The notes: a model not told the origin generated them from the sequence alone. 64,000 nt of DNA from Thalia democratica (GCA_965202585.1 OZ241829.1:84010001-84074000), one strand, 5' to 3'. Counted from the first letter of the stretch, positions 25,594 through 64,000 are shown. Made by a program: numbers and translations.

Positions 25594-26659
25594 TAGTAGA
25601 AAACAAGTCCTAAAATTCTTATTCATTTTAAACACACAGAAGTTACCTGAAATTTTCCACCACTACTATAACAACAAAATGTATGCATAATAAATTGTAC
25701 TCACCAGTTTTTTACTTTTCCTTCAAAATTTTTGAGTTTTTATAATAAAAAAACATTTAAAAGCCATTACACAATTTCAAAAAGTAAAATTCAAAACTTA
25801 AGTCATTTTGTCTTTGCTTCATACTGGTCGCTTTATATATTCCTAAATATAGTTATTGATGTTAAGTTAGATTAGGTTTGAGTGACATTTAAAAAATAAA
25901 TTTTGATTAAAAGTATTCTGAAACCAAAAATGTGAGTATCACTTAAAATGTTAGATCTTTTCACATCTGTAAAAGTAAAATCTGTTGAAAAAATCAATAT
26001 TTATTCTTTAACTACCTCTTTCTTTGTCAAAATCTTACTGAAGAAAGTATGTAACAAAATTTAGCTTAGTTGAAGAAAGTTTTCCATCATTTACTTCTAT
26101 ATTAGGCCACGTTCAAAAAGTTTTTTACGTCATTTGCTAGGTTATGTTATTTAAACTCTTATTGTCTAAGATTGAGTGTGTATTCAATCCTGGGTCACTA
26201 GCTGTGTTTTTTTTTTTTTGACTTTTGATATAATTTTTTTTTTACATTTCTTAACGATAATGGATCTATCCTTATCCTTTGGAAGTTTTAATTCTGTTCT
26301 CCTTTATGGGAAATGAGCTCTCTTCAATTCTTAACAAATAATTGCTGTTACTAATCTGTTATAGTTTTTGTCTACCATGTGTTTTAAGCTATAACATATG
26401 ATTTTTATCAAATTACATTTTTCAGGTTGAACAGCAAGTTTAATGAATTCTTGGACAAAACCTTTTACGGGCTTTTTTAAAGAACCATTATTTGTAGAAT
26501 ATTCTACACATGTCACTCTTTAAGTGGTAGGCGACAACATAGTTTTTACTTATGTAGCCCCTTTTTTGTAGTTGTTATTAAAATGAAAAGTGTTTTTCCT
26601 TCCTTTTTACGGATTCCTTGTTAATTTTTGGCATTTCACTAAGTTGTTAGTTAAAAAAC

Positions 26660-26810
26660 ATTTTGTAGCAAAAAGCATTGCAAATTCTATTCAGAGCAGA
26701 CCACAGCTGGTGCCATCTTGTTGAAGAGAATTACAAATAGTTTATATTTCCCATTCCTTAACTTCTTTTAGGTTTGAGTTCTAATGCACCAGGATCCGTG
26801 TAAGTTCTAA
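26660..26810 (-). pseudogene. Ulp1/SENP (peptidase C48) fragment, catalytic Cys region
   Basis: Minus strand ...EWEI*TICNSLQQDGTSCGLL*IEFAMLF; Q-x-D-G-x-S-C-G motif. Confidence 0.75.
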
Positions 26811-26869
26811 TCTTTTCAGATCTGGTTTTACAGTTTCAATGAATGTGAATTAATTTATAAATCATATAA

Positions 26870-27060
26870 ACTTGTGCTTTGCATTTTTGACCAGTTTTTG
26901 AAAACAACTCCTTGCAGTTCCAATGTTTGACGCTAGTGTGCTTGTTTTGCGTTTAACAATGTAGTATTGGTTTTTACCTCAAATGATACTTATGAACGAG
27001 TGGAAGACCACAAAATATCCATATGTTACCATTTATTTCATTTTTAAATGGGTAATTTTA
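26870..27060 (-). pseudogene. FLYWCH-like zinc-finger fragment (MULE N-terminal type); second copy ~44060-44260
   Basis: NYPFKNEINGNIWIFCG...YYIVKRKTS...HWNCKELFSKTGQKCKAQV (frameshifted). Confidence 0.5.
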
Positions 27061-27084
27061 AGATCTATATTTTTAATTTTTTAC

Positions 27085-27140
27085 AGATGTTACTAATGTC
27101 ACAATAGCAACTAAATTGGTATATAACCATGCTTTTATCA
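27085..27140 (-). pseudogene. Penelope GIY-YIG endonuclease fragment (copies ~44280-44340 and ~45165-45215)
   Basis: DKSMVIYQFSCYCDISN matches the V-I-Y-x-F-x-C-x-C-D-x-x-Y-I-G start of Penelope-type GIY-YIG. Confidence 0.6.
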
Positions 27141-27389
27141 AATTTCAATGTCTTTTCTTTTCTTTCAGGTTTCAATAAAAAACTTGAGATAAAAGCTATT
27201 TGGTTTGACAACAAAAATGTAGTACATACGTGTCAGCTGTTTAATATTCTCTAAACCAGCAAATGTTTTATTTGTGGACTAAAATTTTTAGATAAATACA
27301 CATAAAGCAGATAGCTAAATAATTTTGAGAAAAATTCATCAACATACCTAATATAAAACTTTTGTTTTTTGTTTCAAACATTATGTTAT

Positions 27390-27720
27390 TATGCTTGAAA
27401 AATGCCAAAAAAAAAGCTTTGAAATCTCCTCTTTTTGAAAGAGTACATGTTTTTACTTCTTTTTTGAAATTTTTTGGTCTGTAGGCACAAAGTTAACTGA
27501 AACGAATCTTTCAAACCATTGATTGAAGATTCATAATTTAATAGTTTTATGCAGTTTTCTGCAGCAGCTATAGTGGAAAACTCGTTACAGTCAGTATTAC
27601 TAAGAAAATATTCAAACCTTGAAACTCGTTTTTTTCTTTCTGCAACTTTGCAAACAGTTTTTGAGTTGTAGTTCCATCTAGTTTTGCATTTAGAAGGAAC
27701 ATTCACTTCTAACGTCTTCA
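27390..27720 (-). pseudogene. hAT transposase fragment (ZMYM1/PRKRIR-like); copy ~45350-45720
   Basis: VPSKCKTRWNYNSKTVCKV...FEYFLSNTD..FSTIAAA...LL....LQK: TRW motif plus the downstream helical region. Confidence 0.65.
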
Positions 27721-28399
27721 TTCAGGTGACTTGAGGATATTAGACCTATAGCTTGCTTAAGTTTTTCTACACGTATATTTTTTGTTTAGATTGTAAAATA
27801 AGCGTTGCAGAGTCTTCAGGTTGAGAGCAATTTTCATGTTCATTATTTATTTATCATCTTTTAAACCCAATATATCATTCCAAATTAAGATTTTTGAGTG
27901 CCCATCAACTGTAATTACTTCAACCAGTTGAAAAAGAATTGATACTTGTAACTCGTTGACTCAACTTCTTTCAAGTCCTCCATAATGTTTTTAAGAACAC
28001 TTCAGAGCAATAAGAATAGTTAAGTTTAATGTTGGTGTGCTGTTATTCCAATCGTAGAGTTTAAATTTATTATATTAACTTCTGTTTAAGTATATCATGT
28101 CCATATTGATGGAGGTGGTAGTCTTATTAGACATGATTACCACATAATAATACAGATTTGAATCTTCTGTGCCACCCTTCAATCTGGTTGTTAGTTGTAT
28201 GTTGGTTGTTTCTAGTTATTTCATTCACATTCAAAAAGTTAAATTGTTTGATAGAAAATGCTTTTAATTCAAATCAGTGGTTGAAATTCGTCGTGCGTGA
28301 GCTCATCTGTGAAGGCCATTTAATTGATCAAGTAGTTTTTTCTTTCTGCACCTTTTTATACTTTGGCAGGTCACGAAGTTATTCCTTAAAAACCGCTTT

Positions 28400-28860
28400 T
28401 TTAGCTAAAAAGCAAATTCTATGCAGAGCAGGCCACAACTGGTATCATCTTGTTGAAGTTAATTTCATAAAAAACACAAAAAAAAAAGTGTAAACTTGAA
28501 CAATTGGGTGTATGAGATGCCATCATTAGTACCTCATCCAAGGTACTCAACGTCAGAATTCTTGAAACCTTGCAAATTTTGCCTGCACCTGACATGTATT
28601 CCATCATTGCCACTATCAAATACCCATGTGCTTTTATGTTTGAGTTCTCTTGCATTAGGATCCGTGCGATTATGTACTTTTGCAAACCAGCTCTCAATAT
28701 TTTTTCTAAGCTGTTTGCAGAATTTCTCATTTAATTTTTAATGTACAGAACTTTATTGTGTTTTTCAAACATAATAAATATCAAATGTTTCTGCCCGTTT
28801 ACAAATCTGTCTAAATTCTTGTTATATACCGAAATTAACCAGTTTTTATCTTCTTTAGGG
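28400..28860 (-). pseudogene. Ulp1/C48 protease pseudogene, the longest copy
   Basis: NWLI...LDRFVNGQKHLI...KHNKVLYI, KFCKQLRKNIESWFAKVHNRTDP...KSTWVFD, then QQDDTSCGLLCIEFA; stops and frameshifts present. Confidence 0.75.
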
Positions 28861-28929
28861 GCCTATCTCTAATTAACTATGTGTTAATTAATTATCTAAT
28901 TAATCTAACTTCGTATTTAAGATGAAAGA

Positions 28930-29240
28930 TATAAAATGTGTAATAATAACTAACACTTTGTTCGTTTCCAATGAAGTTAGTTTACAAAGATGCTCGAATA
29001 TCTCAACCAGATGTTTTAATGTGGTTGAGTTTCCCTACTGTAAAGCTTTCACACTATGTGCAACCTTGCTATTAGGAAAAAAAGGTGAAAATTTGAGTGT
29101 TGTTAGAAGTCCGTCAGAAAAATGGAATAAGACATTTTGATAATAAATTTTATAATTAGTATAAATGTCAAAAAATCCTTTTTTCATACCACACCTTTGT
29201 ATTTTCCTTATAATGTTTTGTCCTAGATGGAACAAGCATC
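28930..29240 (-). pseudogene. MULE (Mutator) transposase fragment; partial copy ~40170-40370
   Basis: FHLGQNIIRKIQRCG (C-x-F-H-L-x-Q motif), then L-P-x-S-K-V...LIEIFEH. Confidence 0.7.
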
Positions 29241-31569
29241 CTGTTATGGTACATGATGGAAATTTATTCTAAATTTAAATGTTATTAATCAATATTAATA
29301 ATTAAAAAGATTTTTGATTAAACTTTCTACAAATCTTATGTTGTTTCTCAAAAATATAACAACTAACTTTGACAGCGTTAATTAAAGCCAATTAAGTTTT
29401 GTTAATTACTTAAGGTTGTTTTACATGGATTAATTTTTTTTAAATCTGTAATCATTCCTGCTTGATATTAGCAAACTTCATCTTATTTTAAGTTTTTACT
29501 CTTTTGGTGCTAAATATAAATAGAGGAACTTAGTTAGGTTACTACCTTTTTTAAGCTCGTTCTCCCATTTTTTTTACCTCAATGTCTAATTCTAGACCAC
29601 TCTCTGATGTCCATTCCGGTTTAGGCCTAAATACTCTCCCGAAATGACCATCTTTTGTGACTAAATACTTAAAGGGTTCATATGATTTGTTCTTCCACTC
29701 AGTTATAGCTAAAAAGTTTTTGAATCTAGTTAACCTTATATGACTTTCATTCACGTTCCATGAAGAGCTTGTTGCAAAGCTAGCCTGACTTCCGTCTGAC
29801 GTTTGTTTTTCTTGAGATAACCATCCAACTGGATTTCAAAGATTTCATTCTTGTTGCCCCTAAGGTTCGCCTTATGACTCATTTTCCGGTTCAACAGTGT
29901 CTCTAGTGCCAATGTTTGGAAGATAGTTCGCATACATAAGGTCTGTTTTATACCTTTTGGCAGTTTCTAAAAAGAATTTACGAATTTCTTTGCTTAGTTT
30001 ATAGGAATTCTGTTTTGTTCTTTTCAACGTTTCACGGCGTAGTAGTTCACCAACAAAGTTCCATCCGGTAATGCTGTATATGTTCCTAGTGGCTTGTCTT
30101 GTTAAAACATAAGGTTTTTATCAACATTTGTTTGCATGATTTCACCTTGAATTGGTGTAAATCTGAAAACCCTTTGAGTACTAACAGTTCAATGAGACAT
30201 AATCCTTTTACATGTTAAACAAATCTTCATCATCTTTTTTACTTCTTAAGATCTCAAAACAGATGTTCATGTATCTCTAAGTAAGTCAAGTTGCATCCAT
30301 ACACGGTTTTCAACCGCTTGCTGAAGTTGGTTATATTGTTGATCCTATATTTTGTCTTTAAAATTTTTTTATCTTGTTAAAACGTTCAAAAATCTCGTTG
30401 ATCAGGTTCACTAGGCTAAACGAAGTTTCGGGAATGGTTACCCGATGATGCGTATAGTTCAGTAGTTGACAATTTGCATCGACGACAGACCTCTTTATCC
30501 GTGCAAAAAGTCTGTATTAGTTATACTATCTGCATTCACATGTTTTTTACAAGAAACTCAAGTGTTGCCGTTTCCCTTTTGCCTCCCAAGCCCAGATAAT
30601 TTTAAGTGTATTTTGAAACCGTGATCCCCATAAATGAAAGTTATTTATGTTGATTAAGACCAAGTTTAAAGTACTATCATAGAAGTTTACACATGTACAG
30701 TTTATACATAACTTAGATTACGGATTTAAATTACCATATTGCCATCGTATGTACGGGAGATAGTATTGTTGTATTTGCGTCTTGCAGTAAAGCTTAATAA
30801 AAAATATTTTACACAGTTAAACCTTGTTTATTGACTTTGGTAGACTTGCTTTTGTGGTTTTGATAGAGGAGGACATTAATACTATTATTAACATCAGCTT
30901 TTCATGTAACTTACGGGAGGAGTACCTTGGGGTGGTGGACATATTAGTCACCATGCTAAATCGTTGGGAAGGTTTTCTAGAGGTTAGCTTTGATACATCT
31001 AGATTAGAGGAAGGTTAATAATTAGGGTCCATGTTTGGTATATTGAGTCAATTAATAAACAAAGTTACGGCAAAGCAATGTAAGCCCATAAATTTATTAC
31101 ATTTTGAAATCAATACAAATAAATTCAAATTTAGAAATATGGCAAATGAGTCGAATATAAAAACTTAGCAGTGAATAGTTAAGATTAGTACCAGCCCTAA
31201 TTGAATTGTATACATTAGCAGTTTATTATGTTTTTTTTTTTTGAGCTGGAAACTAACTGCTGAGTTCAAATTTAACTGTTCAATTCCAAAAACAGAGCTT
31301 GAGTTCCAAACAAGCAACAAGTGGAAATCAAAATGAGTTATAAGTTAACTGATATCACTTACTCAAAACTTAAATACAGGATTTGTAGACACACTTTAAA
31401 GGTAAAAAACAAACACAAACTACAGATCTCTATGTATATATTATTTTAAATTACTATAGTTGTAAACTAAATGTTTTACTATAACTTTCCTGATAACTTT
31501 TTACTTTTTTTGTGTTTCCATTCAAGTTTTCCAAATTATTTTTTTTTCCAATTTTGTGAAAATGCAATT

Positions 31570-31830
31570 ACCAGTTTTTTATACCTACATGTTAACAAAA
31601 AAGTTCTGAAATTTTACTGGTGCTGGTATGTGGAATTCTGCAGTAAACTAGTAACTGCGCTTCTCCAGACACATCAACACTCCCATCCAGATGTATATAA
31701 AACTGATTACATAAACGCAATTTTCCTAAAAGCTGTTCTTTCATATTTTGAGCTACAAGCATGCATCTTCTAGCAATTGTTCTGGCAGACAAAGGAATGG
31801 TATCAATTCGTTTAGCAGCATCATAAGTAA
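31570..31830 (-). pseudogene. hAT transposase fragment (Buster/Charlie, FAM200/ZBED5-like), first catalytic Asp region
   Basis: SARTIARRCMLVAQNMKEQLLGKLRLCNQFYIHLDGSVDVSGEAQLLVYCR matches TI-x-RR...QL...F-x-L-x-LDESTD-x-S-x-x-AQLL-x-Y-x-R. Confidence 0.85.
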
Positions 31831-32407
31831 TTTAGTTATGTTTGTCGCTCAAATCTATTTAATAATACTAAATACTTTTTACTTTCTTTTAAAAAACACT
31901 TTTCTCACTTTGTCACAAATGAAAGAATATTTAACAATTTTACTTCTTTCTACAGTTTTATGTGACTGTGTCTGGTTATAGTTTTATTAGTTTATTTTAT
32001 AAAGAATTGCACATTGAAGCTATTTGGGTCACCAGCTGTGATTTTTATTTTCTAACTCGTAATGATAAATTTAATTTTTACTTTTTTTATAGATAATAGA
32101 TCTACCCTTATCCTTATGAATATTTTAGACTGTTCTTCTTTATATTAAAAAAGAGCTGTCTTGAATACTAATTAGTACGGTAAAGCAAAAAAGTTAATTT
32201 AGATTCTACTTAACATTTTCTCAATAAAGAAGGATAGCTAGTATTTTTACTGTAATGAACAGTTAAGTTTAATACCGCTATTGATAGTAGCATCATTTGT
32301 TTCCTGTTGTTGCTGATCTTCTGAATATATTGACTTTTTAGTACTTTGAATACCAAAATTACCTATAAAATAACAGGTTATTAAACGAAGTAAGAAAAGT
32401 AAAATTA

Positions 32408-34460
32408 CATGAACCTGTAGTTAAATTTAATTTTTTTTTTTTATAGTTTCATAACGTAATGATTTAATAGAATTGAGCATAAAATATTTAGCACGATTTC
32501 CTAAAGTGCTTAAAACAAAATAGATTAAGTTTGGCATTTTATACCACTGAAACAACACCTCTAGCTGTAAAAAGTAAAGGGCTGACTTTTCACAAGCGTT
32601 TTGTATCCCGTGGTTTGAGCAATTTATATGAAAAATATTCTTAAATTTCCATTCTAAAATTGCTTGCAGCCCATTTTGTTTTCCGACTGTGGAAACCGCT
32701 CTATCTGAACCTGGTTATGAAAGTAGTTGAAGCAAAAAATGTGGTTTTTACCAAAAAACATTGTTTTTTTAGAACTTTAGGTCTATAATTCATAAATATA
32801 AAATATTTTGATTGATAAAACACTTTTTACATTGATTTAGAGTTAATATCACAAGGTTACAACTGTATTTAAATAACAAGTTTGATGCAGCAGTATGTGT
32901 ATACTACTCAACCTAAATGAGTACTTCATTCAAATATATTTTGATAAAGTTTTGCGTAATATTGTGGCGATTTCGATTTATATTATTATCTTCTCATTTC
33001 TTTCTGCTGCACCATCTGGTTGGCGGTTTGGCTGAACCCACCTTCTTTTTTGCAAGAATTGCCTCAAAAACTTTGTCCACACAATTAAAATTAAAACAGC
33101 CTTATCCTATTTATTGTTGTCGAAATTCTGGTGTTAGCGTTTTGTTTTCTAGTAAAACAAACGTTTATGTACTGCTTCGTTTTATTACCTGGTTTCGGTG
33201 AGCGTTAGCTGACCTGAAAACATGGCCTACCCCCTATGGTCTTAAACAAGCAAATATAAGTTGCTTCTCTTTTATTAGGCAACAAACAATACACTAAGGG
33301 AACCACTGACCCGTAGCATTTACGAATGATCAATAGTTTTTTAAATTTATTCAATAAGAAAGCTTTATTTTAGCTGGTTTAACTAAGTATTTCATCACCT
33401 TCGATTAAAGATTTGTCTTCGACTACGCTAATAAGAACATCAGTTTCTTTAGCAGAAATAATCTTTTTAAATTTTTCTTCGTAAAATGAGGGCTTGTATC
33501 GTTCCAAACCATGATTTTCATTAGTTGCTTTTTTAACTATTGCATCGACCTTAGCATTGAATGCGTGTTGATAAAAACCTTGTGATCTGTTGTTACCTTT
33601 TTTCTTTTTAAAACTAGTATCCCATTCATCATCTTTATTGAACACGTTTATTTTTTTTTGGCATCTTCGTCAACTCAGTCATGTTAATTGCTTGGTTTAG
33701 CATATAAGTCTCTTGGTCTTTGTTATATATTTTTCTTAGTTTTTTTAAATAACCGTGATAGGTCCATCTTGTATTAACATCGCCATCATCATCTTCTGCA
33801 TGGTCTTTCTTTCTTTTTGTCCATATTTTATGTTTTAAGGAAGAAAACCACGATAGTTTTCAAAAGGATTTAGGAAAGTTAAGAAATTCTAGTTTTTGTT
33901 GAAATACTGTAAAATTTTGCTAAACTATACACGTAAATAATACTTTAAGTTTAACATTCAAACTATTGGTTTAAAACATAAGTATCCGAATTTGAATGAA
34001 AGTCAAATGACTTACAATTAGTCTTGGTATTCTGCCCCTTACCAGAAGGATTATTTTTTTGGCCAAAGCATTTGTTCTAATTTTTTCTAGTAGGCTTCCC
34101 AGTAGATTTTTGTTCTCAATTTGTTTTTCATGAGCAGCTATGACACATGTATCTAGAAAAATATTTTTGAAGATTGCTTATCGAAAAGAATAAACTTCAA
34201 ATTATTTAAGTTATATCAAAGTTGTAATTAACCTGGATTTTAAAAGTTTTTCAGAAAATATTCTGTAACTATAGGCATAATTTATTTGGGTTCTTAATTG
34301 ATATAAAGTTTTTGAAACTTTTTCTATTTTCCATGCTTGCGTCTATTTTATTATTCAAATCTTAGGTAAGCTGTGTAGATTTTAGTAATTTACTAAAAGC
34401 ATTTACATTGACTCGTCTGGTGACGTCATTTTTAGTTTTTGAGTTCATTGAAAATTTAAT
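32408..34460. repeat. ~2.05 kb direct segmental duplication, copy 1 (copy 2 at 53594-55650)
   Basis: Long identical runs between the two intervals (I estimate >90% identity); includes a MULE VPLVYCLLPNK piece and an intron-containing exon pair. Confidence 0.95.
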
Positions 34461-36043
34461 AGAACTGTTTAGGAAGATGGTTGAGTTATCTGTACGTTTG
34501 GTTTACCATCTTTTTTATTTGCAGACGAACTGTTTCTGAGCATTCTGGAACTTATTGCCAAAATGTTCTTCATACTTTTCTTGCTTTTTTAATTTGTTTG
34601 AAATTTTTTTTTATAAGTGCTTCAACAAATCAAACCTTGAAAAAACTAACCAAAAGTTTTTATACAATCAAAAATACCATGCATCAAAATATAAATTTTA
34701 AAACTTTTATGTATTGTAAAAAGGCTGAACAGGTTTTGCTACAAATTATAAACAAAACATGAAGTTAACAGCAGGTACGTTAACAAAAAGTTTCGTTATT
34801 GTTTTTTCGTTATCAATTGAAGCTTTAGCGGTGTTCACCGAAGTACTGTGATCTATTTTCAACAAATTATTAGAAAAGTGCAGAAATTCTTGTACTAAAT
34901 AACCGTACCAACTGTTTTTCTCGCGCTGATGACATTCTTCAAAGCCTCTCCCAGTCCTTTAACTTTTCACATCTCAAAATTTCTACGCCGTCAAAAACTG
35001 ATTGACTTTTATTACTTGGCAGACTAGTACTGTGCTCCTAGTACTTCAGGTTGGGAACAACAAAAGTATTATTAACTTGAGTGACTTTTTGATTTCAAAT
35101 TATTCACTATGTACTTACCAGGGATTACAATTGTGTATAAGTCAATTTTATCTGCTGCTTTTAAAATCTGTCCCATGTTCTTTCAAGTATTTATGGAAGC
35201 TGGATTTGCTGGTTCAATTTTTTAAACAATTTTAAGTGTTGAGCTGTATAATGAAATTAAATAATTAACTTTTTTGTTAAACAGTTTCTACAAATAGTTA
35301 CAAACTGTAACATTTAGCCTAGAGCGCCTTCCTACGTTTCTTGAGTTGTGGGATAACATGCCTTCGATTGCAATACCATTTCTCCGGTATAGGTTCAGAC
35401 CGTAGTTTAAGTTCTTCAAGGATCATCATTACAATACTCTCAAATATGTTCAAGCTGTAGTTTAATTGATATAATACTATTGGTTTTATAAAGACATCTT
35501 GAAATGTTAGGAAATTAAATAATCTTACCTGTTTTTCTATGTTTTTTGCTGTGTTCGGTTTCCACTAAAAAAAGAGAACGTTATTGTGGACTTTATATGT
35601 AAATACAATATTTTAAACTTCCAATCGATTTAACTCTACTAATTTTTCTTTCAGTTTCTATCAACATCGACCTAATGATATTGTTTTTATTTTATTAACC
35701 ATGGCTTTATTTACAAAGCTAAAAGCTTACTTGGTTTTTAACGTTTTCTATTCTGTTCTCCACATCCTAAAAATAACAGTATACTAAAATTATTAAAAAA
35801 CATTCTTTAAATACAAAATAAATATATGCTACTAAATCATAAAATAACCAATGATTTATTAATAATCAGCATTTTAAGAACAAAAAATTCAAAATTACCT
35901 GAATTTTTCATCTTATGTTTTTTACGAGGTTGAGGCACCTAAAAAATGAACATTGTCGCTAAAACAAATGTTTTAAAATTCTACTCAATTAAGGCGTAGC
36001 TTGATCTATATCAGCCGCTGCTAAATATTTTGAAGTGTTTTTG

Positions 36044-36525
36044 ACTCAGAGTTCAATGTTTTCTGTTTTCTAGACTTCCAAACCTCTTCAATAGATAAAG
36101 TTACGTCATATTCTAGTCTCTTTGTCAATGAAGATTTTCAAGCTTGTTTTCAATTACATGACTTTCGTAATAATATCTAGTATATAATATCTATGATACC
36201 ATATATCACTTTTTGTTTGAACCACTCAGAGTTCAATGTTTTCTGTATTCTAGACTTCTAAACCTTCAATAGATAAAGTTACGTTGTATCCTGGTCTATT
36301 TGTCAATGAAGACTTTCAAGCTTGTTTTCAATTACATGACTTTCGTAATAATATCTAGTATATAATATCTATGATACCGTATATCACTTTTTGTTTGAAC
36401 CACTCAGAGTTCAATGTTTTCTGTATTCTAGACTTCCAAACTTCTTCAATAGAAAAAATTTCGCAGTATTCTGGTCTCTTTGTCAATGAAGACTTTTGAA
36501 ACTTGTTTTTAATTTCATGACTTTT
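36044..36525. repeat. 2.7 tandem copies of a 178-180 bp unit
   Basis: actcagagttcaatgttttctg at 36044, 36224 and 36402; the minus strand reads as a decayed peptide (EEVWKSRIQKTLNSEWFKQKVIYGIIDII). Confidence 0.9.
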
Positions 36526-36719: not shown

Positions 36720-37260
36720 CTTTCACGGGTTATTTTCTGAAAGTCTTCAACGGGCCACAAACAGCCTGTTTCTTCGGCAAGCTCTCTAAGGGTAGTTATA
36801 AAATTAATTTTTCTGAAAAATGTATATTACCCATCAATTTCATTAAAACTTTCAAGCTGTTTCCATTCAGAAGTTTTGAAACCTCCATTTAGGCAGTCAT
36901 AAGAATTTTTATCGTTTTGAAACATGACCCGCTTATCACCATCTTTTGAAAAGTTGAATTTTCAAAACTTTTTTTCAAATTACAAAAATCCTCATTATAA
37001 TTTTTTTTTTGAATCACTGAAATTTGTTGGCAATCATCATATGGCTCGCTCGTGTTTTTCTTATGAAAATGACAATTTTGATATTAACTTTTCTTAATAC
37101 TTTGTCTTTTCTTAAGAAATTATTCGCGAAGCTCCTTTGTTGGCTTAACTTAAATGTGAGTGACCGCTTCTCTTGATAATATTTCCTTAGCGAACTGTAA
37201 GTATTTTGATGCTTAAAATACTGAGTAAAGTTAACGTTCGTTTTGTTTTTTTTTACCATA
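36720..37260 (-). pseudogene. Nudix hydrolase-containing ORF remnant, copy 1
   Basis: MGNIHFSEK..TTLRELAEETGCLWPVEDFQKI (frameshifted Nudix box); homologous to 46070-46560. Confidence 0.65.
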
Positions 37261-37945: not shown

Positions 37946-39469
37946 TTATATTAAATGGAGAATTGTCTTTTTGAATGCGTTATTATCGCTGAATTTTCTA
38001 TTTTTCCTTATTTTTCGCAGTTATTCTTGCTGATTCATTCTTAATATTGTTTAACATTTAAGTTGAGCTTTTTTAATTTAAACAATAAAGCAGGTTAAAT
38101 AATATTATTTGGAAAACTGACCATCTGATCAGCAATTTCAAGATATTTTTGTTTTCGCCGTTTGCTGACTCCTTTAGAACTTTTCAGTTTCACATCTTTA
38201 GAATGACTGATAAATTACCCACAACTAGTCTTGGAATTCTACCCCTTACCAGAAAGATTCTTTTTTTTGGCCTTAAGCATTTGTTCTATTTTATTTTCTA
38301 GTAGGCTTCTCAGTATATATTTGCTTTCAGTTTGTTATTCATGAGCAACTATGACACATGTATCTAAAAAGGTATTTTTGAAGGTTACTTATCGAAAAAA
38401 TTAAAAGGTTGTTTGTTTTCAAAACCAATTAAATGTGCCATGAATCCATCTGGGCCTTTCTTTTAATTAATTCCATTTAAATTTTGGGTTTTTAAGTCAG
38501 CCCAGGTACACCACGTGACTGGTCCACTTTCTCTATGTACACCATGTGCCTGGTGTAGTAATGTTATCTGTCTTTAAAGCAATTTTAAAAGTTAAAGTAA
38601 ACACAAACTACAGATCTCTATGTATATAACATATAAAATTATATATAAACTAAATTGTTTTAATATTAATTTCCTGATATCTTTTCACTTTCTTTTTGTG
38701 TTTCCATTCAAGTTTTTCCAAATTAAAACCAGGCAAATAGTGATTATTATGACTTTTGCCATTACTCGTAGTATTTAGATTTATTGGTATATTTTTTAAT
38801 TTTAACTTTCTGCCACTGTTTTTCCTTATTTTTCTTCCTCTTTTTTATCACGAATCTTGTTGTTGAGATATTCTAACGCCGCCTTAAAATAACTTATAAC
38901 TTTTTTAGTTAAGTAGTTTAATGTGAACTGAAGTAACAAACATTGTGTTTACATTTTGACATGACAAATAAGTTACTAAAAAAGTGTTTTTTTTGTAATA
39001 TTTATGTTTTCTAAGTTTTTTAGTTTTTGTTCTTTTGTTTAAAACGTTTTGGTAAATGTGTTATGCGTTATCAAACGAGACCTTGTTTTTGTAAGTTTTG
39101 AAATTCTTATAACTCATTTTAGGAATATTTTTCTTAATCTTCATAGGGAGTTTTTATTGATAAAAATAGTTTTTTTTACTTGATTTATTGTATGGGCAGT
39201 AGTCATCAGTTAAAAGGTTTAATTGGATGTCCAAGAAGTTAGTAGAGATTTTACCTGCGTTGATTGTAATATCGAATCCAATGTCTGACAATTTTATTAT
39301 TATGTGGTTTTTTTTTGCAAATATTACATTTTCTTTTGTTTTCTCAGTTTAATGTATCAACGATGCATTATCTGTTTGTTGGATCTCCTTTTTATAAACT
39401 AGCTTCTTTAGAAAATCAATAAATGATTTTTCTCTTTTTTATCAAATTCATTGGCGTGTTCTAATTTAA

Positions 39470-39580
39470 CAACTTTTGTTGTATCATAAAAAAATTTAAT
39501 TGATTTTGCTCAAATATTCTGTTTTATTGATTAGAACAACACCTGAAGTTTTATCAGGTTTGGCTGTAACAATTTTCTAA
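39470..39580 (-). pseudogene. Penelope reverse transcriptase N-terminal fragment
   Basis: KIVTAKPDKTSGVVLINKTEYLSKIN matches I-x-x-K-P-D-K-G-x-G-V-V-I-x-x-K-x-x-Y. Confidence 0.75.
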
Positions 39581-39789
39581 ATCTTTTTAATAATATTGAT
39601 TAAAGTTAAAATTTGGCATTCATCATCTGATTTTTGTTTGGTACTGAAATAGCATAGTTGTGAGCAATTGCTACCAAGTTTGCATTGAAACTTTTTTAAA
39701 CCATTGCTTTCTTTAGTTTTAAGGCTATTTACTTGATTAATAAAGCTTAATAAAAAAATGATTTACTTGGGTTGAAAGCTTTCTTAATC

Positions 39790-39890: not shown

Positions 39891-39894
39891 TTTT

Positions 39895-51060: not shown

Positions 51061-51449
51061 TGTTGACACAATATTTTCACCTCAGATTGACAAAAGTATG
51101 TCTTAAAGATATTGTCCCCTTCGCATATGTATTATATATATTTTTTATATTGTAATGTCAGTGTGATGCATTTCATATAATTTTGTTTTCTAAAAAAAAA
51201 TTAATATGTGGACAGATTTAGAAAGTCTTGGTTTAGTTTTTAGGCATAATGGTTTTTCTTAGTTTTAATGAAAAAATTTACCTTGATAGGTTTGACATCC
51301 ATTTCTCAAAATTTAATCCCTGCATCTCTAGCTTAATGATTTCCCGGGTTAACCAGGTGAAATTCTTACCCCGTGTTTGGCAAGGGTCGATCCATTTGAT
51401 TCGTTCTTTTTACTCTTCTTAATTAGTTGTTGAATTTTTATTACAATGT

Positions 51450-52223
51450 AGTTTATTTTATAAAGAATTGCACATTGAAGCTTTTTGGGTCACCAGCTGT
51501 GATTTTTATTTTCTAACTCGTAATGATAAATTTAATTTTTATTTTTTTTATAGACAACGGATCTACCCTTATCCTTATGAAGTTTTTAGACTGTTCTTCT
51601 TTGTATTGAAAAAGAGCTCTCTTGAATACTAATTAGTACGATAAAGCAAAAAAGTAAATTTAGATTCTTCTTTACATTTTCACAATAAAGAAGGATAGTC
51701 AGTATTTTTACTGTAATGAACAGTTAAGTTACATACCGCCATTGGTATTAGCATCATTTGTTTCCTGTTGTTGCTGATCTTCTGAATATATTGACTTTTT
51801 AGTACTTTGAATACCAAAATTACCTATAAAATAACAGGTTATTAAACGAAGTAAGAAAAGTCAAATTGCATTGCTAACCTTAGCAGATATTTAAACCTTA
51901 AACTATTCAAAAGAATGTTGGTATAATTAAAAACAGATGACAGAAAAATTGCTGTAACTAACCCGGTATAATTTTTATCTAGCATGTGTTTTAAGCTATA
52001 ACGAATGATTTTAAATAAATTACACTTTTCAGGTTGAACAGCCAATTTTATAAATTCTCGAACAGATTGTTTTGTGCTTTTCTAAGCTTTTTTTTGTAAA
52101 ATATTCTGCTCGTGTCACCTTTAGGTGGTTAGTGACAACATAGTTTTTACTTTTGTAGTCCCACTGAACGCAATCTATATAGAAATTTTTTTCGCCTTCT
52201 GAACTAAAAATTTTGCATGTCAA
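51450..52223 (-). pseudogene. Unidentified multi-exon gene remnant (partial copies ~26270-26520, ~31990-32405, ~36560-36650)
   Basis: IDCVQWDYKSKNYVVTNHLKV...EFIKLAVQPEKCNLFKIIRYSLKHMLDKNY; small exon ttttatag|GTAATTTTGG...AATGGCG|gtatgt. Confidence 0.45.
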
Positions 52224-52629
52224 CTACAAATTGAATTTTGTTTTCCAACATTTTAAGCATACAACCATACACTGCCTTACAATTTTTTAACATAGAATAA
52301 ATGTCTTTTGTCTTGCAAAAACTTTAATAAGGCTTAACATACAAATTTTGGTCAGGAATATCAATTTTCCTACTATTTCAAAATTTAATTTCTTTATCAT
52401 GTTTACAAATATTTCTTTTTACTATTAACACTTCAATTATTAATTGAGTTATTTTTTTTATTGAATAATTTATGCTGAGGTAACTTGATCATTTCTTAAT
52501 CACAGTGCTTGCTGTGTCTCTTTGTCTGCTTTCAGATTTGCATAATAATTTGTTTCATTCGTCTCTACATGCCACCTATTTGCCTAACACATTAACTAAC
52601 AAGTCTAACACATTACTACAAATTTTACT

Positions 52630-52820: not shown

Positions 52821-53593
52821 TGAAGATATAGAAATTATTTTATATTTTATATTTATTGTTCCTTTTTAAAAAATTGTTAATTTCTTACAAATTTCTTAAT
52901 CTTTGAATTAAAGTTCAAGTAGTTGATTTTTATTCAAGATATTACCATTATTAAAATATTTCTTAAACTAGATTTTGACTCAATTTAACTTTCTACAACC
53001 CATTTTAACTATCTACAATCCATTTTAACGAAGTTTCTACTATCTTCTTTTTTATAAACTCCAACTCCCAGGCTTAAGTTGATGCAGTACTTAATATCTT
53101 AAAGTAATTTTATAATAATTAAAGGCACTAAAGGTCTTGTAATCTATTCTTTTTTTACTTAGTAGATGTGCATATTATACACTCTGAAATTTGGGCCTGC
53201 TGGTAAAGACAAGCTGCTTAAGTTGCTACATTTGAACCTTAAAACTTCTAAATAATCTTGGATTTTTTACTAACATGAACCATTGTTCGTTTTTTATACA
53301 GCAAGTTATTCAACGGAACTAAATGCACTGCGTCAACTTCTTAGTATGCTTTGTAGTTCAAAATAAATTGATTTTTAATCCACGTTTTCAACTATGTAAA
53401 ATGTAATGTATGAAATTAATTTATGTCTAACTTAAGTATCTGGCGTTCATATCCTATTTACCATGTAATGGTGAATGATAAACCTAATAAATTTTTTTTC
53501 ATATTTCGCTTAGTTCATCTGTATATTCTATCGTAATAATTTTCGTACGGTGTGGTGAGCTAAAAAACCAGTTATATACAATGGAAATTAGAT

Positions 53594-55650
53594 CATGAAC
53601 CTATAGTTAAATTTAATTTTTTATTTATTTTTATAGTTCCATAACGTATTGATTAAATAAAATTGAACATAAAATATTTAACACGATTTCCTGAAGTGCT
53701 TAAAATAAAATAGCTTAAGCTTGGCATTTTATACCACTGAAACAACACCTCTAGCTGTAAAAAGTAAAGGGCTGACTTTTCACATGCGTTTTGTATCCTG
53801 TGGTTTGAGCAATTTATTTGAAAAATATTCTTAAATTTCCATTCTAAAATTGCTTGCAGCCCATTTTGTTTTCCGACTGTGGAAACCGCTCTATCTGAAC
53901 CTGGTTATGAAAGTAGTTGAAGCAAAAAATGTGGTTTTTACCAAAAAACATTGTTTTATGCAAATTTAAGTATATAATTCATAAATATAAAATATTTTGG
54001 TCGATAAAACACTTTTTACATTGCTTTTGAGTTAATATCACAAGGTTACAACTGTATTTAAATAACAAGTTTGATGCAGCAGTATGTGTATACTACTCAA
54101 CCTAAATGAGTACTTCATTCAAATATATTTTGATATTTGCGTAATTTCTGTGGCGATTTCCATTTATATTATTATCTTCTCATTTCTTTCTGCTGCACCA
54201 TCTGGTTGGCGGTTTGGCTGAACCCACCTTCTTTTTTGCAAAAATTGCCTCAAAAACTTTGTCCACACAATTAAAATTAAAACAGCCTTATCCTATTTAT
54301 TGTTGTCGAAATTCTGGTGTTAGCGTTTTGTTTTCTAGTAAAACAAACGTTTATGTACTGCTTCGTTTTATTACCTGGTTTCGGTGAGCGTTAGCAGACC
54401 TGAAAACATGGCCTACCCCCTATGGCCTTAATCAAGCAAATATATGTTGCTTCTCTTTTATTAGGCAACAAACAATACACTAAGGGAACCACTGACCCGT
54501 AGCATTTACGAATAATCAATAGTTTTTTAAATTTTTTCAATAAGAAAGCTTTATTTTAGCTGGTTTAACTAAGTATTTCATCACCTTCGATTAAAGATTT
54601 GTCTTCGACTACGCTAATAAGAACATCAGTTTCTTTAGCAGAAATAATCTTTTTAAATTTTTCTTCGTAAAATGAGGGCTTGAATCGTTCCAAACCATGA
54701 TTTTCATTAGTTGCTTTTTTAACTATTGCATCGACCTTAGCATTGAATGCGTGTTGATAAAAACCTTGTGATCTGTTGTTACCTTTTTTCTTTTTTAAAC
54801 TAGTATCCCATTCATCATCTTTATTGAATACGTTTATTTTTTTTTGGCATCTTCGTCAACTCAGTCATGTTAATTGCTTGGTTGAGCATATAAGTCTCTT
54901 GGTCTTTGTTATATATTTTTCTTAGTTTTTTTAAATAACCGTGATAGGTCCATCTTGTATTAACATCGCCATCATCATCTTCTGCATGGTCTTTCTTTCT
55001 TTTTGTCCATATTTTATGTTTTAAGGAAGAAAACCACGATCGTTTTCAAAAGGATTTAGGAAAGTTAAGAAATTCTAGTTTTTGTTGAAATACTGTAAAA
55101 TTTTGCTAAACTATACACGTAAATAATACTTTAAGTTTAGCATTCAAACTATTGGCTTAAAAACATAAGTGTCCGAATTTGAATGAAAGTCAAATGACTT
55201 ACAATTAGTCTTGGTATTCTGCCCCTTACCAGAAGGATTAATTTTTTGGCCAAAGCATTTGTTCTAATTTTTTCTAGTAGGCTTCCCAGTAGATTTTTGT
55301 TCTCAATTTGTTTTTCATGAGCAGCTATGACACATGTATCTAAAAAACTATTCTTGAAGGTTGCTTATCGAAAAGAATAAACTTAAACTTATTTAAAGTA
55401 TTTGTAATCAAAGTTGTAATTAACCTGGATTTTAAAAGTTTTTCAGAAAATATTCTGTAACTATAGGCATCATTTTATTTGGGTTCTTAATTGATATAAA
55501 GTTTTTGAAACTTTTTATTTTTTTTCCTTGCGTCTATTTTATTATTCAAATCTTAGGTAAGCTGTGTAGATTTGAGTAATTTACTAAAAGCATTTACATT
55601 GACTCATCTGGTGACGTCATTTTTAGTTTTTGAGTTCATTAATATTCATT
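53594..55650. repeat. ~2.05 kb direct segmental duplication, copy 2; the last ~0.55 kb recurs at 59640-60220 and in pieces at 38200-38400 and 40540-40710
   Basis: Direct sequence identity with 32408-34460. Confidence 0.95.
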
Positions 55651-56374
55651 AGACCTGTTTACAAGGCGAAGCTGATACAACCGACCGAACGCCGTCATGC
55701 TAAAGCAGTTCAAGAAGTAAACTAAGTAGAAAAAACCTCTTATTTGAGAAAACTCTCTAGCGCCATTTTTATATACCTCTTTGTAGGCCTTATGGTTTAA
55801 ATCAATTGATTTTTTATCCACGTTTTTAACTTTTCGTTTTATTGTTATGGTTTTTGACTTATTGCAATTTTATTTTTGTGAGCGAGTGAGAGTCAAACAT
55901 GTTTGTTAAGAATTTTAATAAATATGTAGCATATAAATTCCTTAAGTCTCTCGGCGACAATCGAAAACAACATTTGCGATAAGTGACCAGTAATGCTTTC
56001 CACCTGCAAGCGTCTACCGTGAGGTCTCTACTCAATTCATCTGGACTTTTGTTTTAAATATTTCCACTAAAATAAGTTTTCTCTTTTATAATTGGTATGT
56101 CTAATCAACTCCATCAATTTTTTTTTGTATACCATGCGCTTGGCGTGGTTCACTAACCCCTTACAAAGTACTATCCGGTACTTTCTGTTAAAAGAAAGAA
56201 ATAAATAGCTTATTGTAGTAAAAAATTGCATAATAAAGTTTAATTAAAAATTCTTCGTTGATCAAAGTCTCTAATTTATTTCTATATGCTTTTAAAACAC
56301 CGAAGTTGTTAGCAGTTATTTTTATTTATAGTTGTTCCAATTGATAAATATAAACAAAGACTGCTAAATTTTTC

Positions 56375-60719: not shown

Positions 60720-61107
60720 TTTTAGTTAGAGGAAAAAGTCTATCAGCTGTGGTAAGACTTGTTCATGATTGTGCCCGACAGTAACAAACTCGGTAACTGG
60801 AGGTCTGTTATTTTCATTATCTGTAAAAGAAAACATAAGTTCTAATGGTATACTATAAAAATTGAAAAAAAATAGTATGTGATAAACTTATTTTACTAAA
60901 AGTAGGTACTATTGTTAAAGCATAGCCTACCCGCCAAAAACGGGAATAGTATTATGGACGTTTTTTCATTTGGTTTTATAACGCTCCCTGTTGTATCAAG
61001 AAATAACGACATAAACGGTATTTTCTTCATTTGCTCTTTTGTTATGAAAATGCATGTCAGTATACATAGTGATACTGGACGCGTCATAGTTAAGTTGCTG
61101 CATTTAT
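60720..61107 (-). pseudogene. MULE-like transposase, first catalytic Asp (DxTG type), with a 110 bp intron at 60821-60930
   Basis: MQQLNYDASSITMYTD / MSLFLDTTGSVIKPNEK...LAG|gtaggc..ttttacag|ATAAT; the splice restores the frame to ...LADNENNRPPVTEFVTVGHNHEQ. Confidence 0.65.
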
Positions 61108-61550
61108 CTAAAAAATAGTGAATTCTAATTATTTATCCAACAAACTGGAGCTCAAGTTGATGCGGTAACTACTGAATATATTTCTGTATAACTAATTGAG
61201 AGCACTATATATCTTATTAAAATTTCTTATGCTTAAACATTTCAAATACACTCGGAAGTTTTATTAGCTTTTTTTATCATAATCACACAATTATGACTTT
61301 TTAAATCTTAGTTACTATAAAATTTACTTGGTTAGCACGGAACAAACCAATCACAATGATATTTTTCCTTAATCTTTGCCTGTACACCTTGATTTTTTCC
61401 AGACATCACTGGTGCTCCATCATATGTCTAGCAAATTAATTTATTTACATTGTTACCTAAACCTAATTCTAACTCAACAAGTATACAACCTGAAATTCTT
61501 GAAGCTTTCTGGTTTTCTGGTAAGAAAAAAGCCCAAAATCTTTCCATAAC

Positions 61551-61780
61551 TTATTTTTTACTTAATTCAATGACAGTTTGCACGCTTTCTGAAAAATCAG
61601 TTGTATCATCTGGTAAAACAGATACAAATGATGTTTCATTTATTTCATTAATGATCAAATTTTTAAAAACATTTAAACAGATTGATAACAAATCATCTTG
61701 TATTGTATTGCTATGCATCTTGATTGCTCTCTTTTGCATATCTTCAACCATACTAGAAGCAAATTCCAGCAAGCTTTAAT
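61551..61780 (-). pseudogene. hAT transposase fragment (ZMYM1-like), first catalytic Asp
   Basis: HSNTIQDDLLSICLNVFKNLIINEINETSFVSVLPDDTTDFSESVQTVI matches S-x-x-IQN-x-LI...I-x-x-EI....FS-x-x-x-DETTD-x-S-x-x-EQ. Confidence 0.8.
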
Positions 61781-62539
61781 TTGCACTTGAATTTTTTTTG
61801 ATATTCAGTGCTTCTTAACTTGAGAATTTCAGAATGGTCTCAGTACTATTTAAATTTTCTACAAGCTTTTTTGCAAATTGAAACTAAAAATTGTAAATCT
61901 TGCCTTAATGTTCTAGTATGGAACCTTCTTTCGCAAGCATCTCCTATATTTTCTCCTATAGTTTTACAAACATTTGATAGTGTGGGCTATGGCTGTTGTT
62001 GGGCTAAAGCCTCAGGTGGGTCAGGTTGACTTTCTATGGGTAGATTGTCAACCTGACCTTTTTGTTCATACTTTACTTGCAAGTGGGGTGACCTTCTAAC
62101 AGGCTTATGTTTAGGACCCGCTGCGGACAACTTATCTAAGTTGGACATAATAACTACTTTAAAGTGCTAACTTGTAAATTATCAGTAGACACCTGGGACG
62201 TAGCTAGCTCAAAAAAGTTACGAATCTGCAAAAATTAAAATATCTGAATAAACACGTGCTAGCGGGAACATAGAAATTTAAACTACCTCTAATGTTATTG
62301 AACTTAATCTGAAAATATGCAGTTATGTTAATACATCAAAAATGGAATGTTGAGGTACGAGTGATAACTGTATACAAGGCAATTTAATTTGATCCACACC
62401 CCCTATGACTCTTTATGTCTTGCCACTTGTGTAAACCAAGAAAACATTCATTAAACGGTAGGAATTTTTATAGGTAGTTTTAAATATTGGGTACTTTCAA
62501 TTGCATCAATAATTCTGGTTCTATTGCATCAATAATTCT

Positions 62540-62820
62540 GGTTCTATTGCATCAGGATCCGTGCGATTGTGTAGTTCTGCAAACTAACTCACAATATCTT
62601 GTCCAAGCTGTTTGTATTTCAGATTATATGGAATACAATATTTTGTCTAAGCTGTCTGCAAAATTTTTCATTGGATCTTTAATGCATAGAACTTTATTGT
62701 GTTTGTCAAATATAATAAATATCCAGTGTTTCTGCACATTTACAAATCTATCTAAATCCTTGTCAGAGTCCAAAATTAACCAGTTTTTATCTTCATTAAA
62801 AGGAATATTTCTATTGCTTT
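62540..62820 (-). pseudogene. Ulp1/C48 protease fragment, catalytic His and Asp region
   Basis: NIPFNEDKNWLILDSDKDLDRFVNVQKHWIFIIFDKHNKVLCIKDPM (HW..DP); ends in a 24 bp tandem duplication at ~62500-62550. Confidence 0.75.
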
Positions 62821-64000
62821 CCTCTTAAATTAACATTTTTTATTGTTTTTTACACTTGTTTCTAACTGAAAAATTTTACCGCTATCACTGCGACCATTTC
62901 TTGTTCTCCAATTTTTATTGGTGTTTTGTTAATTTCGCTGTCCCGTTCTTGATAACTCAATTCTATTTTATTAATTTTAACTTTCCAAACAGTGTTACAT
63001 TCATTGACCGAGCACACTAAGGTAAGTGAATAGAATTTAGTTATAAGCTTATAGTACGTGCCTTTAAATGCATAACAATTGCAGTGCTTTATTTCAGGGT
63101 GGAATTTTTGTGTGACATCTGTAAATAAAAAAACACAAATATTTTAAACTTTATCTAAATTTAGATCATTAATGTGGCTGATATATTCTATACTTTTTAC
63201 TTTTGTATTATTCAAAGGTAATTTTGTTGTATAACATTTATCTTCTAATTATCTGTGTTAAAATATAAAATAAAACTTGTCTAGTTAAATAAATGGTGAA
63301 ATGTTAACAACTTTCATTTGCATCTGAACATTTAGACAAAGATAAGATATCATCTGTTATTAAAACCATATCATCTCCTTTACACTTTCTTATTGTCTTT
63401 GTAACAGTTTTTGCTAAGCTATCTGATCTATTTCTCCAAATGTATTTAACCTTTTACAATTTTTAAGTAGTTAACAATTATGGTTTAAATCAAAAGCAAG
63501 TTTATACAAAACAAAAACTTTCAAGTTCTTCAGGTTGCTGAGCTCCATGCGGTTCCTACTGTTAAAAAATTAATATATTAATCTACAATATATAAATACA
63601 AGTCGTGAAAGCTTTTTTGATTAATTTCAATAATAAACAACTGTTTTCAAAGTAGTGCATATTCTAAATAGAACATTAAAACTTCTTAGATCTTCTCTAT
63701 CTTTTCAAACCTATTCAATGTGCCTTGCACAAAATTTCTAAAATATATTTGAAAGTTTAAAATTAAACTTTTTCGTTTCGTATACCTTTTTTTTATTCCA
63801 ATTTTTTGTATTAAATTAGAAGGTCTTATTGGTGTATTTATCTAAGCTATGTAAAATCTCATTTTTGTTTATAATTCAAAAAAATCCCTACTCAAATATA
63901 CCCAGTGGTCACTAAGGTTTTATGACGTCATAATGTTTCTGCTTTCACCAGGGAGAATGTTTGTGATGATAATGTGAGCTTTTTTTCTCAGCTACTTTTT

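Follow-up and report, generated by a model that had tools for sequence, protein, structure and literature searches.

On the evidence of its sequence, the last 38 kb of the window (the whole 64,000-nucleotide stretch of Thalia democratica DNA that was analysed) is a strand-polarised archive of short coding slices, derived from MULE, hAT, Penelope-like and other genes. The block would most likely work as a one-strand piRNA source locus, a candidate role to which we give a probability of about 0.4. Unrelated families agree in orientation after duplicates are removed, so that an RNA read from the plus strand would be antisense to all of them. We infer transcription of the block, its direction and the production of any small RNA from this arrangement.

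Extent and content of the polar block

The first-pass annotation placed a one-strand mosaic of transposon fragments at 25700-64000. The polar mosaic is confirmed with adjusted limits: skew and G+C put its start at about 26,000 and its end at about 64,300, some 300 bp beyond the window. Both edges are sharp, G+C being 0.29-0.31 inside the block and 0.19-0.25 in the surroundings. AT skew is negative (T over A on the plus strand) in 74 of 76 500-bp bins of the block as against 22 of 48 bins in positions 1-24000, and it extends to block sequence that carries no identification. Plus-strand dinucleotides are biased in the block (TC 2186 versus GA 1479, TT 6837 versus AA 4586), the minus strand being purine-rich. 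The features of the window are as follows.

24161-24910, plus strand: intact Ariadne-like ORF of 250 aa, with its end 1.1 kb short of the block on the upstream side
25468-25585, no strand: minisatellite of AAATTGCACGAG-type units between gene and block (TRF)
26000-64000, minus strand (the sense of all identified fragments): strand-polarised mosaic block (AT skew, G+C, direct repeats)
26292-26507, minus strand: L025-type MULE slice, duplicating part of 51486-52344 (MULE library, self-comparison)
27527-27715, minus strand: 63-aa slice (RWN motif region) of a dispersed hAT-like family of 610-646-aa ORFs
28132-28258, minus strand: second L001-type MULE slice, from a downstream exon (tblastn 2e-12; blastn 78% over 109 bp)
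31478-31858, minus strand: hAT-superfamily transposase slice, DUF4371 region (phmmer; tblastn on minus only)
31988-34471, no strand: 2.5-kb segment with direct duplicates at 51449-51871 and 53585-55661 (94-96% identity)
33235-33345, minus strand: L024-type MULE slice (tblastn; 69 bp at 90% DNA identity)
39550-39561, minus strand: KPDK motif piece, a putative N-terminal Penelope motif (motif only)
39750-39980, minus strand: weak hAT C-terminal dimerisation domain piece (Pfam PF05699, E=0.0067, 16.6 bits, below cut-off)
41183-41522, minus strand: Penelope-like slice with LYG..PLRPIVS motif (motif; dispersed copies)
43078-43413, minus strand: L001-type MULE transposase slice (Pfam MULE 6.7e-7; tblastn E down to 5e-31)
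43699-43908, minus strand: further hAT-like slice, aligned to residues 399-479 in a relative of 547 aa (found by a single query, E=3e-5)
45402-45722, minus strand: diverged local duplicate of the 27.4-27.7 kb composite (self-comparison)
46073-46312, minus strand: module with a Nudix-box-like motif (copy at 36733-36945; local blocks only)
51486-52344, minus strand: interrupted L025-type MULE pieces, residues 199-373 of a 647-aa ORF (MULE library)
54421-54509, minus strand: L024-type MULE slice, local duplicate of 33235-33345 (MULE library, self-comparison)
61335-61775, minus strand: hAT-like slice of a different lineage (hAT library match)
62651-62809, minus strand: slice of a low-copy family of ORFs of about 510 aa (copy at 28692-28856)

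About 16 coding-sense sites from at least seven lineages could be verified, and all of them lie on the minus strand with none on the plus. The lineages comprise three of MULE type and at least two of hAT type, together with one Penelope-like lineage and the family of about 510-aa ORFs. The original count of more than 30 recognisable fragments was not reproduced, and Pfam alone, applied to stop-free pieces, sees two transposon matches on the minus strand and zero on the plus. That every coding fragment reads on the minus strand nevertheless holds: Pfam searches of 150 plus-strand pieces and searches with the MULE and hAT libraries found no coding fragment on the plus strand, let alone a number comparable to that on the minus. 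Agreement among seven lineages gives a two-sided p=0.016, and skew is negative in 12 of 12 runs of at least 400 bp that are single-copy within the sample (p=0.0005), so the shared orientation, as had been argued, survives de-duplication.

The slices are about 70-380 bp long and end abruptly inside parental exons. The L001-type slice at 43078-43413, for instance, is 80% identical in DNA to its parent over 330 bp and stops within a parental exon at a CxxH motif. The hAT slice at 31478-31858 has 238 phmmer relatives at E<=0.001, of which the full-length ones bear Dimer_Tnp_hAT, DUF4371 and a Spin-doc zinc finger. The slice at 61335-61775 shares 73-86% identity with a degraded family and 35-37% with the 610-646-aa ORFs; part of it (61554-61775) matches these same ORFs about 590 bp upstream of the match of 27527-27715, a slice that is itself joined in frame to unrelated sequence. 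A plus-strand ORF at 61432-61776 is an antisense-frame artefact with no deep relatives. The Penelope-like slice has dispersed DNA copies in both orientations in the genome and over 100 matches at the protein level, of which many fall in ORFs of 799-846 aa and some form inverted pairs. As first noticed, and as seen by motif, the minus strand carries the LYG..PLRPIVS piece before the KPDK piece; with KPDK on the 3' side, the order is non-native. Intact parental ORFs exist for the Penelope-like (799-846 aa), hAT-like (610-646 aa) and MULE (401 aa) slices, which are 76-90% identical to them, and no slice exceeds about 90% identity to any dispersed copy compared.

Some names given at first reading were not confirmed: 'Ulp1' (the family of about 510-aa ORFs) and 'Nudix' have no support in Pfam, PDB sequences or the Atlas, and 'GIY-YIG' has none in Pfam, the one library searched for it. 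Twenty selected pieces yielded nothing useful in single Pfam scans at E<=5, and Rfam and tRNA scans gave no match. A word-based protein search with a 110-aa piece returned three unnamed short proteins, which belong to no Pfam family.

Duplication and its possible part in keeping polarity

The block belongs to a set of at least four related blocks inside 300 kb, one of them inverted, which have short modules in common (median 137 bp) in shuffled order. The flanks were sampled in alternate 10-kb pieces. The sampled block DNA amounts to 104.6 kb, of which at least 67 kb is non-redundant polar sequence. In seven of seven sampled sister segments the orientation of the homology agrees with the sign of the skew. 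Repeats among the related blocks are 99.5% direct (116,890 aligned bases direct, 536 inverted), compared with 74% in neighbouring DNA, where 26% is inverted, and the 29 internal repeats of at least 150 bp in the block are all direct. The related blocks share almost nothing with the intervening DNA; the block and 154 kb of neighbouring DNA have only about 1.6 kb in common. Another copy within the sampled block DNA exists for 59% of the block; these copies include collinear duplicates of 2 kb (91-96% identity) and many shuffled modules (72-90%).

The duplicated unit is larger than the block. The upstream region, the gene and the block form an old segmental duplicate as a whole, and copies of the Ariadne-like gene at C5:84090723 and C5:84184751 each lie upstream of a sister block. 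The gene-to-block distance in these two sister units is about 6.5 kb and at most 8.8 kb. The gene-then-block layout is one ancestral event in three copies. The minisatellite between gene and block is hyper-abundant, with a word depth of about 5e5 in three DNA runs as against about 50-100 for unique DNA. Sister blocks also hold, on the sense strand, pieces of a LINE endonuclease, RVT, a host-like RRM and Kelch; once these are added, 11 lineages are co-oriented (p about 0.001). In the sister block L044 the plus-strand ORFs belong to no family; they overlie a minus-sense LINE, in its G+C-rich 5' region.

Direct repeats with collinear stretches, the hallmark of a segmental or tandem duplication array, are thus present, and the strongest alternative to a piRNA source builds on them. 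An old founder, polar by chance or made so, would have been enlarged by tandem and segmental direct duplication, unequal exchange and homology-directed repair; with all repeats direct, recombination cannot invert the sequence, and polarity would be kept without function. The duplicated fraction of the block, its collinear copies and shuffled modules, the great excess of direct alignments and the copying of upstream region, gene and block as one unit all agree with such a history, as do a closed repeat repertoire without recent insertions and a near-symmetric substitution pattern. We nevertheless consider it somewhat unlikely as the full account: it leaves the polarity of the founder unexplained, along with that of the non-redundant sequence, and seven to 11 or more unrelated lineages agree. 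Zero opposite-sense insertions occur in more than 100 kb, against the inverted quarter of alignments in the neighbours. The non-duplicated runs are polar too, and their polarity is not explained by a duplication array.

Candidate piRNA source and rival origins

That the fragments lie overwhelmingly in one orientation is what is expected of a uni-strand piRNA cluster; strand bias of fragments is an accepted sequence criterion for flamenco-like clusters (PMC10643416), and piRNA-sized RNAs from repeats have been reported in a salp (PMC5174732). In the pathway proposed here, local direct duplication would have enlarged and reshuffled the slice archive. Plus-strand transcription would start at, or read through, the Ariadne-like gene and yield one long transcript, to which all the archived slices would be antisense; this might then be processed to piRNAs that aim PIWI proteins at transcripts of those families with intact genome copies. 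The position and strand of the gene fit the read-through layout of mosquito clusters; its own poly(A) signal, an AATAAA about 70 nt past the stop, counts against the candidate role, as does the single ancestral origin of the three gene-then-block units.

Several further observations weigh against the candidate role. Plus-strand AATAAA signals are no rarer in the block than expected (68 observed, 54-62 expected). Base changes that took place within the blocks show little strand asymmetry and imply an equilibrium AT skew of -0.04 (CI -0.135 to +0.048), compared with the observed -0.149. It follows that the skew is mostly inherited and bears no footprint of long-term one-way transcription. The asymmetry of A>G versus T>C is only marginal (p=0.017 before correction), and control DNA shows the same trend. 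No recent capture or young insertion was seen in the block, which, with the scant sequence in common with the neighbours and a best dispersed-copy identity of about 90%, argues against the open 'TE trap' that had also been suggested. The polarity of the host-like RRM and Kelch pieces is not predicted by selection for transposon silencing alone.

An RNA-templated origin, in which a Penelope-like or LINE reverse transcriptase switched templates between mRNAs and duplication followed, appears unlikely, despite much that suits it: coding-derived content throughout, the raised G+C and purine-rich minus strand, DNA-transposon slices taken from exons only, co-oriented host-like RRM and Kelch pieces, a skew inherited rather than made in place, and an abundance of intact-ORF reverse transcriptases in the genome. 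Opposed to it are the lack of A-rich tails (neither A nor T is enriched where modules end, in sets of 289 and 303 ends), a Nudix-like piece without a parent outside the blocks, and an RRM parent that is uninterrupted over the match. The slices span no parental intron position, so that intron loss is not demonstrable. We know of no template switching across tens of kb. A template-switch chimera would hold all its pieces in mRNA sense, and would be compatible with a later piRNA role.

More speculative still, and in our estimate improbable, is that the blocks are a distinct genome compartment: one-orientation archives of short transcribed slices (from transposon, host and possibly viral mRNAs), written by RNA-templated or homology-directed copying, not by the usual insertion of transposons, with antisense guide RNAs as their read-out. 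If true, a tunicate would possess a memory system that is both acquired and heritable.

It is very improbable that the block is an intron or untranslated part of a long plus-strand host unit that tolerated only antisense insertions. An excess of T over A is the usual mark of the sense strand of introns, which the block fits, and a plus-strand gene lies just upstream; yet the upstream ORF is complete with its own poly(A) signal, no exon or domain was found in the 150 plus-strand pieces, and the DNA beyond the block is AT-rich without signs of exons. Orientation bias in introns is, moreover, moderate and not total. A single composite mobile element or an assembly artefact as the cause of the one orientation is scarcely credible: some modules do recur in fixed pairs across several blocks, but modules otherwise turn up in shuffled order, mostly inside 300 kb, no long collinear copy lies outside the local region among the scored matches, self-comparison finds no repeated terminal sequence, and independent short-read unitigs (two samples, two studies) run from the gene across the block's edge into its first 4 kb and bridge several module junctions at 95-100% identity.

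Relation to known one-strand clusters

As in the flamenco and flam-like unistrand piRNA clusters of Drosophila (PMC10643416; PMC10495008), tens of kb of decayed transposon fragments lie nearly all in one orientation, and growth was partly by local duplication. In the flam-like loci the bias is limited to Gypsy elements under selection (PMC10643416): Gypsy-type endogenous retroviruses account for it, often as pieces of kb size, and some captures are recent. The salp block, in contrast, draws its slices mostly from DNA transposons plus a Penelope-like element, its polarity covers all sequence and host-like fragments, and no recent capture is present.

The mosquito read-through core piRNA clusters (10.1101/2022.08.22.504762) start within a few kb downstream of a same-orientation gene, an expressed one in the mosquito and a matter of sequence layout here. 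The transcript of such a cluster is antisense to the fragments stored in it, as a predicted plus-strand precursor would be to those of the salp block. The mosquito clusters are noted for viral fragments, of which none was verified in this window. Aedes aegypti likewise has co-oriented mosaics of unrelated fragments, in its case unidirectional arrays built from viral and LTR-retrotransposon pieces, whose origin has been discussed in terms of recombination in the course of reverse transcription (10.1101/127498); unlike them, the salp block has no flanking LTR elements, no A-tails or other reverse-transcription marks, and parents that are mostly DNA transposons.

Literature searches on piRNA clusters in tunicates and on genome assemblies of salps found no cluster-level study. 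Should small RNAs confirm the candidate, unistrand piRNA source loci would be described for a first time from a pelagic tunicate. Their architecture would be unusual as well: the slices are very short and coding-only, polarity is total, and the repeat repertoire is closed to the neighbours. If instead the blocks are silent, they would be a clear case of passive upkeep of polarity in arrays of direct repeats only. In either case, T>A skew, raised G+C and sharp edges together offer a cheap, annotation-free way to map such blocks genome-wide.

Composition and coding sense of the block

The window (G000:C5:84010001-84074000, G000 being the Thalia democratica assembly and C5 the chromosome) is 1.65 Mb away from one end of its 85.7-Mb chromosome, in an AT-rich genome of 802 Mb, and it contains no runs of N. 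The block is a compositional domain with sharp edges, one at about 26,000 and the other some 300 bp beyond the window end; its G+C fraction is 0.27-0.33, as against 0.19-0.23 in the following 6 kb. Of its 76 500-bp bins, 74 have a negative AT skew on the plus strand (mean -0.12), as compared with 22 of 48 bins (mean -0.01) in 1-24,000. Because TC outnumbers GA (2186 versus 1479) and CT outnumbers AG (2365 versus 1713) on the plus strand, and a skew of -0.064 persists when homopolymers of at least four are excluded, the asymmetry is more than one of homopolymer runs; the minus strand of the block is purine-rich along its full length, resembling an mRNA-sense strand. At 36044-36524 the block contains a tandem repeat with a unit of 178 bp (2.7 copies, 91% identical).

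Open frames by themselves differ little between the strands, and the strand was therefore called by homology. Every stop-free piece of at least 42 aa was scanned with Pfam: the 139 minus-strand pieces yielded one match to MULE (6.7e-7) and a weak one to the hAT dimerisation domain, and the 150 plus-strand pieces yielded none. A library made from the ORFs of 30 MULE loci in the same genome matched six sites in the block, belonging to three lineages and on the minus strand only. Two plus-strand matches to this library do not represent a plus-strand MULE, since the queries were antisense ORFs of the library loci. The pieces and matches assigned by the further searches are the following:

27392-27721, minus: piece whose residues 3-65 match a dispersed family of 610-646-aa ORFs, present in both orientations genome-wide
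31478-31858, minus: hAT library match
31595-31831, minus: piece used as phmmer query
43699-43908, minus: hAT library match
61335-61745, minus: hAT library match
61554-61775, minus: piece with 35-37% identity to the same 610-646-aa ORFs, about 590 bp upstream of the match of the 27392-27721 piece, and 73-86% identity to a degraded family

The phmmer search, against 1.84 billion proteins, returned 238 relatives, the full-length ones containing Dimer_Tnp_hAT, DUF4371 and a Spin-doc zinc finger; 150 hAT relatives served as the library for the three hAT matches, all minus, and the hAT assignment of the first-pass annotation is thus borne out. A 115-aa plus-strand ORF overlapping 61554-61775 was rejected as coding: it matches DNA-level paralogs only, never the 610-646-aa ORFs, so that minus is the coding sense at this site. 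The Penelope-like motif piece matched more than 100 dispersed copies, many within 799-846-aa ORFs and some as inverted pairs. In total, about 16 sites of at least seven lineages were verified on the minus strand and none on the plus strand, in agreement with the earlier claim that the fragments all read on one strand. Two of the names given to them were not confirmed: the piece called Ulp1 is a 53-aa slice of a low-copy family of ~510-aa ORFs, a C48 peptidase not being confirmed by Pfam, PDB sequences or the Atlas, and that called Nudix has a Nudix-box-like motif and is a piece found in local blocks only. A near-threshold match to PF21017 (PHA01746-like protein; 5.4e-5, 23.4 bits where the cut-off is 24.4) at 28422-28730 on the minus strand adjoins a copy of the slice of the ~510-aa ORF family.

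Short length and abrupt ends characterise the slices. A MULE slice of 69 bp is 90% identical in DNA to its family; a second, of 330 bp and 80% identity, stops within a parental exon that extends 45 bp more to a GTAA intron start, so that the breaks coincide neither with exon borders nor with the ends of elements. In one 110-aa frame, a hAT-like slice continues in phase into unrelated sequence.

Duplication and the sister blocks

All 29 internal repeats of at least 150 bp in the block are direct. It is one member of a family of blocks: among samples from its flanks on the chromosome, those at 84.098-84.164 Mb and 84.194-84.204 Mb have the skew and G+C of the block, and 83.91-83.94 Mb has the opposite skew; homology orientation agrees with the sign of the skew in seven of seven sampled segments. 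When 104.6 kb of block DNA is oriented by skew, 99.5% of the alignment is direct (116,890 aligned bases versus 536 inverted), as compared with 23,244 direct versus 8,012 inverted in 154 kb of non-block control DNA. The blocks have many modules in common, in shuffled order (median length 137 bp, identity mostly 75-90%), together with a few 2-kb segments that are collinear (91-96% identity). In a genome-wide DNA search with 38,000-47,999 the closest relatives were the neighbouring blocks and contig C71, and dispersed copies are known for only a few modules. The upstream region of the window is collinear at 70-80% with the region preceding the third block, and the Ariadne-like gene has 93% copies ahead of the second and third blocks; the gene/block units are old segmental duplicates.

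Duplication does not explain the polarity, but only preserves and multiplies it, because 41% of the window block is single-copy within a sample covering half of the neighbouring DNA at C5 83.8-84.27 Mb, non-redundant polar sequence amounts to at least 67 kb, all 12 single-copy runs of at least 400 bp have negative skew, and several verified slices fall within single-copy runs (e.g. MULE at 43.1-43.4 kb, hAT at 61.3-61.8 kb). On the sense strand of the sister blocks Pfam identified RRM_1 (twice), Kelch, LINE endonuclease and RVT_1, as against a single low-complexity match, below cut-off, on the antisense strand; with RRM_1 and Kelch, the polarity extends to host-like gene pieces.

Within one sister block, C5:84120079-84120696 on the minus strand (L043:6079-6696, in a sampled segment) holds an intact frame of 206 aa that includes an RRM domain (7e-9). 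Copies at 83-85% identity occur in the inverted block and on C1040, and the frame is 49-52% identical to ~590-aa frames at 83.8 and 84.6 Mb of C4. In a second sampled segment, C5:84140152-84141900, minus strand (L044:6152-7900), is the 5' part of a LINE, comprising a G+C-rich leader and an endonuclease in a 191-aa open frame; it stops abruptly where homology to window position 52630 starts and lacks its 3' part, the reverse of the usual 5' truncation. Contig C71 (25-96 kb) carries the modules of the blocks as well, in inverted orientation at 25-35 kb and in direct orientation at 72-75 kb, with an Ariadne-like gene copy (93%) at 95 kb; it represents the other haplotype or else an additional duplicate of C5 83.9-84.1 Mb. 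Six copies of the Penelope-like slice at G000:C4:40947518-41068567, about 20-30 kb apart, in a single orientation and with short frames, probably mark another polar array sharing this module.

Origin of the polarity

Three runs containing the stretch, from two samples and two studies (the second sample a few per cent divergent), have DNA-typical depths throughout, from the gene across the spacer into the first 4 kb of the block, which supports the assembly for 24,000-29,999. Substitutions confined to a single module copy, 1,186 in all, are near strand-symmetric in pattern; the sole differing pair is A>G at 0.0210 versus T>C at 0.0161 (p=0.017, uncorrected), a trend that control DNA shows as well. 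Since the substitutions imply an equilibrium skew of -0.044 (CI -0.135 to +0.048) versus the -0.149 observed, the skew is mostly inherited from the source sequences, rather than generated in place. AATAAA is not depleted on the plus strand of the block (68 observed versus 54-62 expected). Block and non-block DNA have four alignments in common, about 1.6 kb in all, and no slice is closer than ~90% to its dispersed copies among those compared; the block has not been acquiring the repeats with which the DNA around it is filled.

The co-orientation of at least 7-11 unrelated lineages, together with polar single-copy and unidentifiable sequence, requires a cause. There are two candidates. Selection may have acted within a one-way transcription unit like that of a piRNA cluster, or the block may have an RNA-templated origin in which mRNA sense was retained. 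Selection in such a transcription unit, which is of a known kind and fits the upstream gene, would be the likeliest reading (probability about 0.4). An intact plus-strand Ariadne-like ORF ends 1.1 kb upstream of the block, the layout of mosquito read-through clusters, which counts as one ancestral observation only; AATAAA occurs about 70 nt past its stop. Unlike a textbook transposon trap, however, the block is totally polar, host-like pieces included, its content is coding-only and in very short slices, and its repeat repertoire is closed, with no recent captures. In Drosophila flam-like loci, orientation bias is limited to elements under selection (PMC10643416). These differences keep two other readings alive. 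Passive preservation of polarity, without function, in a direct-repeat array is less likely; the repeats are indeed direct, and duplication leaves the polarity of single-copy sequence to be explained. Still less probable is the RNA-templated origin, in which the slices would keep mRNA sense; module ends carry no A or T tails.

Repeats flanking the upstream gene

Between the gene and the block, at 25468-25585, is a minisatellite of AAATTGCACGAG-type units, the number of which varies among many contigs. Its word depth of ~5e5, versus ~50-100 for unique DNA (three DNA runs), makes it a member of a hyper-abundant repeat family. Upstream of the gene, where the skew is zero, an array of direct repeats, each ~700 bp long and 70-84% identical, occupies 16587-22830 and is related to non-coding sequence flanking MULE loci of the L001 type. 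MULE-flank matches in 13-22 kb number three, and each runs opposite in direction to the block.
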